DNA of 55,514 nt from Octopus bimaculoides. Lineage: Eukaryota. Location: NCBI RefSeq assembly GCF_001194135.2, contig NC_068982.1, forward strand, positions 58,256,672 through 58,312,185, in the 5' to 3' direction. Below are positions 21,033 to 22,579 of the stretch, piece by piece (positions within the stretch are counted from its first letter, which is position 1; each line of letters begins with the position of its first letter). Position numbers and translations under genes: made by a program. Under the pieces are notes generated by a model. The model did no database searches and was not told where the DNA came from. It saw nothing but the letters and a program-made list of their open reading frames with translations.

Positions 21033-21120
21033 TTAACCATTTAGCTTTTAAACCGGTCATATCTGGTCTGAATATTCAACTGCTTTAAGTTCAAATCAAC
21101 CAGATCTGACCTCTCATATC
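21033..21120. mobile_element. Left half of a TTAA-type MITE
   Basis: 'ttaa|ccatttagcttttaaaccgg...cagatctgacctctcatatc' aligns with the first half of 11287-11491, up to 'ctctcagatc'. Confidence 0.75.
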
Positions 21121-21298
21121 ATCATCATCATCATCATCGTTTAACGTCCGCTTTCCATGCTAGCATGGTTTGGACGATTTGACTGAGGACTGGTGAAACC
21201 GGATGGCAACACCAGGCTCCAATCTAATTTGGCAGAGTTTCTACAGCTGGATGCCCTTCCTAACGCCAACCACTCTGAGAGTGTAGTAGGTGCTTTTA
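21119..21298 (-). mobile_element. RTE LINE 3'-terminal fragment with (GAT)n tail, fused to the CCM2 3'UTR
   Basis: Near-identical to 33795-33970 and to 47105-47290 (reverse strand), and similar to 14328-14505. Similarity stops at 'gtgctttta'. Confidence 0.9.
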
Positions 21299-21568
21299 GA
21301 AAGAGAGAGAGGGAGAGAAAGGAAGATAGTTGTATATAAAAAAAAAAAAAAGATATCATAAGTAATGTTTCTATGGGAACAGTTTTGGAAGTTTGAAACA
21401 GGTAGCAAAGGGTGGATGGGTAGATGATTAGTGGAGGAGTTAGAAACTGAAGTAGCATGGACTGTCATAAATGATGGGGGTGCATTGGAAAAAGAAACAA
21501 AAAAAAAAAACATAAATACTAAAGAGAAGGCAAGAAAATCTGTATATGGGTGGGGGGAAAGTCAGATT

Positions 21569-22483
21569 TCATGACACAAAGCTGTCCACATCGACACTGT
21601 TCTCCATGTTATCGATCTGATCCGAGATGCAGTCCATCATTCGATCAAATTCATCCATATCTCCGCTGTTTATTGAGTGAGTTGTAATGCCGTTGTCTTT
21701 GCAGAGCTGAGAATTGCTGTGGAAGCTGGAGATGGTACCATGGCCATTTGCTGGAAGCGCCATAGAATTTTTAGACAGGAATTCTTCAAACACATGATAG
21801 TCTTTTGCTTCTATGAAAGGACCCATGCCAGTCATCATATGCTTCCTTTCTTGTCCGAACAAATTGAAAACTTCTTTGCAAAATTCTCCTGTGGTTGCAC
21901 CTTTCTGTCGGGCAGTGAGCAGAACAGCAAACTGACACAGTTCTGTTTTGGTGAGGCATTTGTGCAGCTTCTTCAGATAATCTTGAATGACCTCAGAATA
22001 ATAACCACCAGTCAGACTAATCTCACTTTCGGTGGTTACGCTAATTGTGCGTTTGGATGCTTTTGGGGAACGGCTGTAGGATGAAGTGTTGTTCTTGGTA
22101 AGGTTCTGGTCAGAGGTTGTTATATACGATGGTTTCAGTGCTGTGTCTGGGGCATTGTTAATGGTGGTGGAGTCACTCTGTGTGTTTGAAGAAGGCACTG
22201 ATGTTCCGAAAGCACCATTTAAGTTGATGTTGATGAACTGAATGGCTACATTGGCATAAACAAGCTGGAAACATTGGTCGACCAATGCACAAATTTCTTC
22301 AGCTTGCATCTTGTCGTCAACATAAAGTACGGCCGAGTTACATTTCTCTGGAACTCCGTATTTAATCGGTAGAATGTAGTCATTGTCGTCTTTGATGTAA
22401 CACACTGCTGCTATCTCATGGATACAGATACGAAGTAGCAACTCATCTTTGCAGGTCAGTTTTATCACAATGGCATCATTCAA
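21569..22483 (-). CDS. CCM2: CCM2 (malcavernin)-like intronless ORF, probably a 5'-truncated retrocopy: C-terminal part of the PTB domain, linker, harmonin-homology domain and C-terminal helix
   Basis: Recognised similarity to human CCM2: LLRICIHEIAAVCYIKDD ~ ILRVPIHDIAAVSYVRDD; AEEICALVDQCFQLVY ~ AEELCCLLGQVFQVVY; IQDYLKKL...QFAVLL...EFC...LFGQERK...PFIEAKDYHVFEEFL ~ the HHD; DEFDRMMDCISDQI ~ DEWDRMISDISSDI. 304 codons with no stop. The start is a TTG within MITE sequence; the first ATG is at 22309. Confidence 0.88.
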   Translation of the reverse strand: MNDAIVIKLTCKDELLLRICIHEIAAVCYIKDDNDYILPIKYGVPEKCNSAVLYVDDKMQAEEICALVDQCFQLVYANVAIQFININLNGAFGTSVPSSNTQSDSTTINNAPDTALKPSYITTSDQNLTKNNTSSYSRSPKASKRTISVTTESEISLTGGYYSEVIQDYLKKLHKCLTKTELCQFAVLLTARQKGATTGEFCKEVFNLFGQERKHMMTGMGPFIEAKDYHVFEEFLSKNSMALPANGHGTISSFHSNSQLCKDNGITTHSINSGDMDEFDRMMDCISDQIDNMENSVDVDSFVS

Positions 22484-22579
22484 AATTTGATAGCTACAAG
22501 ATTATACATGCTTAATTCTAAACAATGTGTCTAAATAAGCATAACATTTGATAAAATAATCTGAATGCTAAAGGGTTAA
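22463..22579. mobile_element. Right half of the TTAA-type MITE
   Basis: 'acaatggcatcattcaaaatttgatagctacaag...aacatttgataaaataatctgaatgctaaaggg|ttaa' aligns with the second half of 11287-11491. Confidence 0.8.

Follow-up and report, generated by a model that had tools for sequence, protein, structure and literature searches.

A 55,514-nucleotide stretch of the Octopus bimaculoides genome (NC_068982.1, forward-strand positions 58,256,672 to 58,312,185; hereafter, the window) was found to contain a processed and 5'-truncated copy of the mRNA of CCM2, the gene encoding the cerebral cavernous malformations protein 2 homolog, joined at its 3' side to the 3' terminus of a long interspersed nuclear element (LINE) of apparently RTE-like type. 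The copied coding sequence, its truncated 3' untranslated region (UTR) and the LINE tail are in the same orientation on the minus strand, and they make up a single 1.35-kb block that sits within one miniature inverted-repeat transposable element (MITE). The arrangement is suggestive of one event of target-primed reverse transcription (TPRT) primed on the LINE tail, a reading for which we estimate a probability of about 0.8 when the two routes by which its template might have arisen are taken together.

The coding part of the block lies in an open reading frame (ORF) on the minus strand (22501..21569) that matched only the Pfam family CCM2_C, the C-terminal harmonin-homology domain of CCM2 (2.3e-17). 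This ORF presented 100% identity with XP_014780213.1, the O. bimaculoides protein annotated as 'cerebral cavernous malformations protein 2 homolog', whose locus lies on chromosome CM046602.1 of assembly GCA_001194135.2. Full-length CCM2 proteins of cephalopods comprise 404-411 residues, as seen in O. vulgaris/O. sinensis (P0007, 404 aa), Argonauta (P0002, 410 aa) and Acanthosepion (P0008), and the retrocopy ORF was 88% identical to residues 104-410 of the Argonauta protein. The retrocopy covers CCM2 codons ~104-404 (window 22465..21569, minus strand), with exon alignments, the Pfam match and protein identity jointly defining a coding sequence in intact frame at 21572..22465, followed by a TGA stop codon at 21569..21571. 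No N-terminal exons of CCM2 were detected by tblastn anywhere in the 55-kb window, and no PTB exons were found in the 33 kb upstream of the retrocopy.

The preliminary description of the window had proposed an intronless CCM2 coding sequence devoid of its N-terminus, and had called for a comparison with the exon structure of the parental CCM2 locus. The genes of Argonauta hians (locus L001, 37 kb) and O. vulgaris (locus L003, harboring a 27-kb gene) were used for this comparison, and both of them contain 12 coding exons. The segment 22465..21569 is collinear with the last 21 nt of exon 4 followed by exons 5 to 12, and the nine corresponding segments, with identities of 93-99% to O. vulgaris and 77-90% to Argonauta, abut without gaps. 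The ORF spans nine O. vulgaris exon segments end to end from residue ~104 onwards, and eight introns present in both genes are precisely missing from the copy, leaving seamless exon-exon junctions. The corresponding O. vulgaris introns are 1.1-2.9 kb long and have GT/AG edges, and none of their sequence was found at the window locus. Homology to CCM2 starts with ATAAAACTGACC, 21 nt within exon 4 and not at an exon edge; in O. vulgaris this exon reads ...AAC ATAAAACT and ends with ...AACATAAAACTAACCTGCAAAGAT. Since the copy begins inside exon 4, its 5' boundary reflects truncation and does not coincide with a splice site. In addition, no synteny with the O. vulgaris CCM2 locus was observed in the window beyond interspersed repeats, and this, together with the intron-free structure, argues against the window copy being the ancestral gene. 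The identification of the CCM2 part of the window as a processed, 5'-truncated mRNA copy is therefore well supported, and both the missing introns and the missing N-terminus agree with the initial proposal.

The 270 nt that follow the stop codon (21299..21568, minus strand) can be aligned, with few indels, to the O. vulgaris CCM2 3'UTR (L003 37345-37624), and correspond to the first part of this UTR. The alignment stops at a (CT)n-like run, ~330 nt short of the first O. vulgaris polyadenylation signal. Beyond this run the O. vulgaris UTR continues with AATTGACAGTGG..., and its first ATTAAA and AATAAA lie ~600 nt after the stop codon, whereas the window continues with AAAAGCACCTACTACACTC.... 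The homology with the UTR ends exactly where the homology with the LINE begins, at 21299/21298, and the letters at this junction are ...CTCTTTCT/AAAAGCACCTACTAC..., which can also be given as ...CTTTCT/AAAAGCACC.... No AATAAA, ATTAAA, AGTAAA or TATAAA hexamer was found between the stop codon and the MITE, where the longest A run is 4 nt, in accordance with the earlier proposal of about 270 bp of 3'UTR lacking a poly(A) tail or signal. The distal part of the CCM2 3'UTR was likewise found nowhere in the 55-kb window. The Argonauta 3'UTR did not yield any DNA-level alignment with the UTR of the retrocopy, and the analysis of the junction is consequently informed by O. vulgaris alone.

The last 181 nt of the insert (21298..21118) encompass a unique part (21139..21298, minus strand) and a terminal (GAT)7 microsatellite (21118..21138, minus strand). 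This tail resembles four other sites in the window, with identities of 94%, 94%, 84% and 71% (94% over 183-185 nt), which correspond to further 5'-truncated copies of the same LINE at 14327-15499 (-), 33795-34130 (-), 47057-47288 (+) and 2042-2200 (+). These copies reach variably further in the 5' direction, for totals of ~1570, 340, 230 and 160 bp, and this variable extent is the pattern of a 5'-truncated LINE. The copy at 14327-15499 (-) retains degraded coding sequence for the C-terminal region of a reverse transcriptase (RT). Tail copies were also abundant in the comparison loci: the CCM2 locus of O. vulgaris (47 kb) has 14, of which 9 are sense-oriented, and that of Argonauta has about ten; the window has 5. 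The O. vulgaris copies, recorded for the gene plus flanks (L003 10001-37344), lie mostly in introns and amount to approximately one per 3.4 kb.

Longer copies connect the tail to the ORF of an RT. A copy in Argonauta encodes an RVT_1 domain (8.7e-31) with a PHD-type finger after the YADD motif, and a near full-length copy in O. vulgaris (L003 ~45100..41168(-)) contains one long frame that encodes an endonuclease and then the RT. The initial Met of this frame lies ~35 residues ahead of an APE-type endonuclease domain (Exo_endo_phos, 3e-11) that is N-terminal to the RT, and no ORF1 was visible upstream of the O. vulgaris frame, where only low-complexity frames were present. An alignment of 20 tail copies from the three species revealed that 20 out of 20 end in ...CCATGC-TA-GCATGG-AAAGCGGACGTTAAAC-(GAT)n. 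The terminal hairpin (alignment columns 136-149) is kept in all copies, two of which, both from Argonauta, show a compensatory UA->CG change. The tail linked to CCM2 conserves the CCATGC-TA-GCATGG hairpin at 21168..21155 and presents 3 private differences in its unique part. The tail is hence the true 3' terminus of a LINE with a single endonuclease-RT ORF, as evidenced by its linkage to this ORF in both L001 and L003.

The single endonuclease-RT ORF and the microsatellite tail fit an RTE-like element, and assignment to the RTE clade rests on this architecture. The preliminary description had identified the 3' segment as the last ~180 bp of an RTE LINE in the same orientation with its (GAT)n tail; the first part of this claim stands, with 94% identity to two copies in the window, and the RTE label agrees with the architecture only. 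Activity of RTE elements has been reported for both Octopus species (PMC9115989, PMC13282606), and RTE, CR1, Dong-R4 and L1-Tx1 are all among the LINEs reported as active in octopus (PMC13282606). A 20-nt word of the tail did not return any match in a full-text literature search, and no named octopus RTE sequence matching the tail was found in the supplements of PMC9115989. The possibility that the tail belonged to a tRNA-type short interspersed nuclear element (SINE) was considered and ruled out, given that longer copies continue into the LINE 3'UTR and ORF, spanning from 160 to 1570 bp.

Several additional features of this LINE were noted. The PHD finger (Pfam PHD, 4.2e-06) follows the YADD motif and precedes the C-terminal conserved region (L001 17226-19214 (-), L003 41993-43677 (-)), and the reading frame of the Argonauta copy runs without interruption across the conserved 3' tail until close to the (GAT)n repeats. 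Ahead of the terminal 181 nt, the LINE 3'UTR is composed of tandem ~65-bp units with a ...GGTGGCACATAAAAAGCACC... motif (L003 ~41350-41800 (-), window 33970-34135 (-)), and these units yield multiple staggered BLAST alignments.

Both sides of the 1.35-kb block, which comprises the cDNA, the UTR and the tail, are occupied by the two parts of a MITE for which the window contains an intact reference copy of ~205 bp (11287..11491, plus strand). When compared with the reverse complement of 11270-11510, segment 22579..22468 matches positions 19-129, with a score of 93 versus 26 +/- 4 for shuffled sequences, and segment 21120..21033 matches positions 135-223, with a score of 57 versus 23 +/- 4 (maximum 39) for shuffles. 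When the halves are joined they produce one alignment with a single 6-bp gap, defining an element of ~201-205 bp. The first part of the interrupted copy (22468..22579, minus strand) encompasses a TTAA end, the terminal inverted repeat TTAACCCTTTAGCATTCAG and the body of the element up to the break, and the second part (21033..21121, minus strand) extends from a second TGATA pentamer to the inverted terminal repeat and TTAA (21033-21051), so that the outer ends of the interrupted copy are inverted repeats of ~19 nt, each starting with TTAA. The terminal-repeat pattern was found at just three sites in the 55 kb (11473-11491(-), 22561-22579(-) and 21033-21051(+)), and two copies of the family were seen in the window. 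Its small size, its inverted terminal repeats with TTAA on either side and its presence in more than one copy mark the element as a TTAA-flanked (piggyBac-like) MITE. BLAST searches of the O. vulgaris and Argonauta loci (105 kb) did not detect any copy of this MITE.

The joining of the two halves almost exactly into the copy at 11287-11491 was as originally described, and the flanks, for which an origin in different MITE insertions had been contemplated, are abutting parts of one element. That they abut as one element leaves no hidden distal UTR or poly(A) beyond the tail, and it also argues for a single insertion. The pentamer TATCA (TGATA on the minus strand) had been noted at both junctions, and it is indeed present at 22463-22467 and 21117-21121. 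The 5' instance is a possible copy of a target-site duplication. The status of the pentamers as a duplication is ambiguous, because they overlap the sequence of the insert: the TGAT at the 3' junction may belong to the (GAT)n tail as its final repeat, and the ATA at the 5' junction may equally be the first bases of the cDNA. In RTE-related elements, the microsatellite tail has been linked with the first bases of the target-site duplication, and an overlap of tail repeat and target such as this one has been described (PMC6007223).

A single event of TPRT would account for these features as follows. The template would have been a fully spliced CCM2 transcript, cut within its 3'UTR and provided with the terminal ~181 nt of the RTE-like LINE. 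The LINE protein would recognize the 3' hairpin and (GAU)n repeats of this RNA and nick a GAT-containing site in the middle of the TTAA MITE, where the repeats could be primed through GAT/ATC microhomology. Copying would then proceed back through the tail, the 270 nt of 3'UTR and the coding region, with a stop or resolution at codon ~104 via ATA microhomology. We infer the identity of the enzyme from the fact that the insert carries the LINE tail; the priming and the origin of the tail are likewise inferred. Stringent LINEs have been described to recognize their own 3' stem-loop and repeats and to mobilize any RNA bearing them (PMC3747384, PMC4176376), and to have 3' tails in common with their SINE partners (PMC3747384).

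As to the source of the template, our preference, held tentatively and at a little under even odds, is for a parental CCM2 mRNA that already carried the LINE tail in its 3'UTR and was copied by the LINE endonuclease-RT protein. The parental O. bimaculoides allele would in this case harbor, immediately downstream of the (CT)n run of its 3'UTR, a 5'-truncated fragment of the LINE in sense orientation, and the CCM2 mRNA with its embedded tail would behave like a SINE. A sense tail in a 3'UTR should not be rare, because tails are very dense in genic DNA (14 in 47 kb, 9 of them sense), and octopus transcripts have been reported to pervasively include fragments of transposable elements (PMC9115989).

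Several points weigh against this explanation or against parts of it. The preliminary description had envisaged the same LINE fragment in the 3'UTR of the parental gene, and in the orthologue of O. vulgaris no LINE tail is present at or near the junction point, the nearest sense copy being intronic. The embedded tail thus needs an insertion specific to O. bimaculoides or to one of its alleles, and no model for a parental O. bimaculoides CCM2 locus appeared in the protein collection. The target-site duplication may amount to anything from 0 to 5 bp, or the MITE may have lost as many as 6 bp. Octopus also has active CR1 families that end in microsatellites (PMC13282606). Lastly, the explanation is derived from one locus only. 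The use of a borrowed LINE 3' end as a retroposition route, put forward in the preliminary description, is upheld as the best explanation for a spliced copy fused to the tail as one block, and its generality as a route is an extrapolation from this locus.

A competing route to the same single TPRT event, somewhat less favored and still a serious contender, is template switching, in which the LINE protein would have started reverse transcription on its own or a related LINE RNA (~181 nt), jumped to an ordinary CCM2 mRNA at an internal point of its 3'UTR and carried on up to codon ~104. Template switching is compatible with one block in one MITE with the tail at the 3' side, the same orientation for both parts and no duplication between them, and it would readily accommodate the absence of a tail at the junction point in the O. 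vulgaris 3'UTR. LINE template-switch chimeras delimited by common flanking direct repeats have been documented outside mammals (PMC2104539), providing a precedent for such a process. A possible 2-nt AA overlap at the junction, where the O. vulgaris UTR continues with AATTG and the LINE reads AAAAGCACC, is weak evidence in the same direction, since a 2-nt overlap is near chance expectation. Against this route, the switch would require internal points on the donor as well as on the acceptor, and no other chimeras of this LINE are known.

Explanations that dispense with a single event fare considerably worse. The CCM2 retrocopy, or a captured cDNA, and a 5'-truncated LINE could have been inserted independently, in either order, with a subsequent deletion of the distal UTR and poly(A). 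LINE tails are frequent (5 in the 55-kb window, 14 in 47 kb of O. vulgaris), and L1-Tx1 LINEs, potential makers of poly(A) retrocopies, are active in octopus (PMC13282606), but the second insertion would have to hit within a few bp of the end of the first element, and after the (GAT)7 the MITE resumes within 6 bp of its break, so that a distal UTR, a poly(A) tract or a further target-site duplication could not fit in. None of these was found elsewhere in the window either. Two independent insertions were rejected because the MITE halves abut, and we deem this account improbable. An assembly artefact, in the form of a short-read misjoin through the high-copy LINE tail or of contamination of the library by cDNA, is more doubtful still. 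The assembly is based on short reads, nine N runs are present in the window (the nearest at 19567-19576 and 22884-22898) and the 181-nt tail is a very abundant repeat, yet a random misjoin via this repeat would not place complementary parts of a single MITE on the two sides, and the MITE/cDNA and tail/MITE junctions both lie in gap-free sequence. The least credible of the alternatives, with only a marginal probability, is that the window contains the genuine ancestral O. bimaculoides CCM2 gene, deprived of its 3' introns and with upstream PTB exons located beyond the window. The window sequence provides the only O. bimaculoides CCM2 model returned by protein searches, its frame is intact and its branch presents few non-synonymous changes (2-3 versus 12 synonymous). 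On the other hand, homology starts 21 nt inside exon 4, directly adjoining the MITE, the shortened UTR ends in a LINE tail, the annotated upstream exon has no relationship with CCM2 and the 33 kb upstream are devoid of PTB exons. An ancestral CCM2 locus with intron loss was rejected, synteny with the O. vulgaris locus being absent apart from repeats.

The layout of the block, with two RNA-derived parts in the same orientation, the LINE end at the 3' side and no repeat between them, is that of a LINE 3'-end chimera. Like the chimeras formed by L1 (U6-L1 and mRNA-L1) and the Magnaporthe WEIRD-MGL/Mg-SINE chimeras, it combines the copy of a cellular RNA and a 5'-truncated LINE 3' end, in the same orientation, in one unit (PMC2104539). 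The L1 and WEIRD-MGL chimeras present flanking direct repeats around the whole unit (PMC2104539), whereas in the CCM2 copy the repeat is at most 5 bp and ambiguous. Furthermore, the 3' partner of the CCM2 copy is, unlike in L1 chimeras, an RTE-like LINE ending in a hairpin and (GAT)n and not in poly(A), and the 5' partner differs from those of both L1 and WEIRD-MGL chimeras in being a multiply spliced protein-coding mRNA, joined at an internal position of its 3'UTR. The likeness to template-switch chimeras concerns the layout; switching itself is a candidate mechanism only.

The tail of the CCM2 copy also shares the LINE 3' terminal sequence, including the conserved stem-loop and repeats, in the manner of a SINE-like hitch-hiker. 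The pairs formed by stringent LINEs and their SINEs (UnaL2/UnaSINE, BovB/Bov-tA and RTE/Au-like SINEs) similarly consist of a non-LINE RNA provided with the LINE stem-loop and microsatellite (PMC3747384, PMC4176376, PMC6007223). The CCM2 head departs from these pairs in that it derives from a coding mRNA made by RNA polymerase II and lacks the promoter of a pol III small RNA, and the composite, known as a single copy, is a retrocopy and not a repeat family such as those of SINEs. Like classical processed pseudogenes and retrogenes of the L1 type, the CCM2 copy is intronless and 5'-truncated, includes 3'UTR, probably resides at a new locus and has perhaps recruited an upstream exon. Unlike them, the CCM2 copy has no poly(A) tail or signal, its UTR is cut ~330 nt before the first O. 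vulgaris signal and its insertion site is not TT/AAAA-like. Chimeric retrocopies mediated by long terminal repeat (LTR) elements (Tan et al. 2016, PMC5131818) also involve a partial mRNA joined internally to a retroelement, maybe via microsimilarity, but the CCM2 copy has a retroelement on one side only, consisting of a non-LTR 3' end, and no LTRs.

The agents of gene retrocopying outside mammals have been described as largely unidentified (PMC5131818), and LINEs that recognize their own 3' end, such as CR1 and RTE, are commonly given as the reason for the paucity of retrogenes in some genomes (PMC5470649, citing Suh 2015; PMC3747384). Stringent LINEs are regarded in reviews as inefficient producers of retrocopies (PMC5470649). 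In the case reported here, a LINE of the stringent kind appears to have copied a spliced protein-coding mRNA on account of the LINE's own tail at the end of the mRNA copy. The chimera layout (U6-L1, WEIRD-MGL) and the logic of tail sharing between SINEs and LINEs were known already, and the novelty resides in the combination of an RTE-like tail without poly(A), a multiply spliced coding mRNA as passenger and a mollusc host. RTE-type LINEs have been reported to be active in cephalopods, including in the brain (PMC9115989), and the succession of spliced exons, truncated 3'UTR, LINE hairpin and (GAT)n in the absence of poly(A) constitutes a signature for which cephalopod genomes can be screened.

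The results also correct the annotation of O. bimaculoides, in which the 'CCM2 homolog' is a truncated retrocopy and not an orthologue. The annotated protein XP_014780213.1 (340 aa, window 21569-23607 (-)) combines the truncated retrocopy with an unrelated first exon of 32 residues. Comparison of annotation and DNA places this exon, which is not derived from CCM2, at 23512..23607 on the minus strand, where it encodes 32 residues plus a split N, and no Pfam domain was matched by its sequence (23607..23512). The annotated splice connects a GT donor at 23511 with an AG acceptor at 22495/22494, inside the first part of the MITE (tataatcttgtAG/C). The acceptor of this predicted splice is supplied by the MITE and, should the model be real, it would represent the exonization of a DNA transposon.

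The preliminary description had regarded a sole CCM2 locus spliced to upstream PTB exons as evidence against retroposition. On the first of these counts, protein searches did not return a second O. bimaculoides CCM2 model, and the cluster comprised XP_014780213.1 and the O. vulgaris/O. sinensis orthologue; on the second, the upstream exon at 23607..23512 is not a PTB exon. Queries with CCM2 N-termini (Argonauta residues 1-180, O. vulgaris residues 1-106) did not retrieve an O. bimaculoides parent, a result that is uninformative because the known Argonauta protein was also missed. Searches with the retrocopy ORF (304-aa and 246-aa versions) did not yield any exact match in public assemblies.

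The coding part of the retrocopy differs from O. vulgaris at 31 of 897 sites, and its frame contains no frameshift or stop in 299 codons. Polarization of the changes with Argonauta assigned 12 synonymous and 2 non-synonymous changes to the bimaculoides/retrocopy branch, plus 1 non-synonymous change in an unpolarizable codon, and 10 synonymous and 1 non-synonymous changes to the O. vulgaris branch. The split between the two species is placed at 13-33 Myr (PMC13282606, citing Huang et al. 2022), and the retrocopy would hence be either young relative to this split or under constraint. A far-reaching and rather unlikely extension of these observations is that the copy might be a live retrogene, and that LINE tails, whether embedded in mRNAs or switched onto them, might be a regular poly(A)-independent route to retrocopies in cephalopods. 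Such a retrogene would combine its intact frame of 300 codons with a recruited 5' exon and a MITE-derived acceptor; its product would keep the harmonin-homology domain but be deprived of ~100 N-terminal residues and, with them, of part of the PTB domain, and it could conceivably replace a parental gene absent from the annotation.

Among the other features of the window, an abundant interspersed repeat of ~410 bp was observed at 49326-49739, 10076-10473, 20014-20421, 31069-31495 and 4178-4669, and the CCM2 locus of O. vulgaris harbors three or four further copies. By eye, one end of this repeat resembles a tRNA-derived head (GGCTGTGTGGTAAGTAGCTTGCTCACCAACCACATGGTTCTGGGTTCA...), and its middle contains a microsatellite; it is probably the major octopus SINE. 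ARAGORN did not detect any tRNA-like gene in the window, including the ~410-bp repeat, and no Pfam domains were identified in three other ORFs of the window. The nine assembly gaps present in the 55 kb are located at 14234-14243, 17724-17733, 19567-19576, 22884-22898, 30897-31057, 31879-32026, 48040-48467, 53971-54628 and 54974-54983. Many of these gaps adjoin (TA)n or (CA)n runs, and one of them falls in the predicted intron of the annotated gene model.

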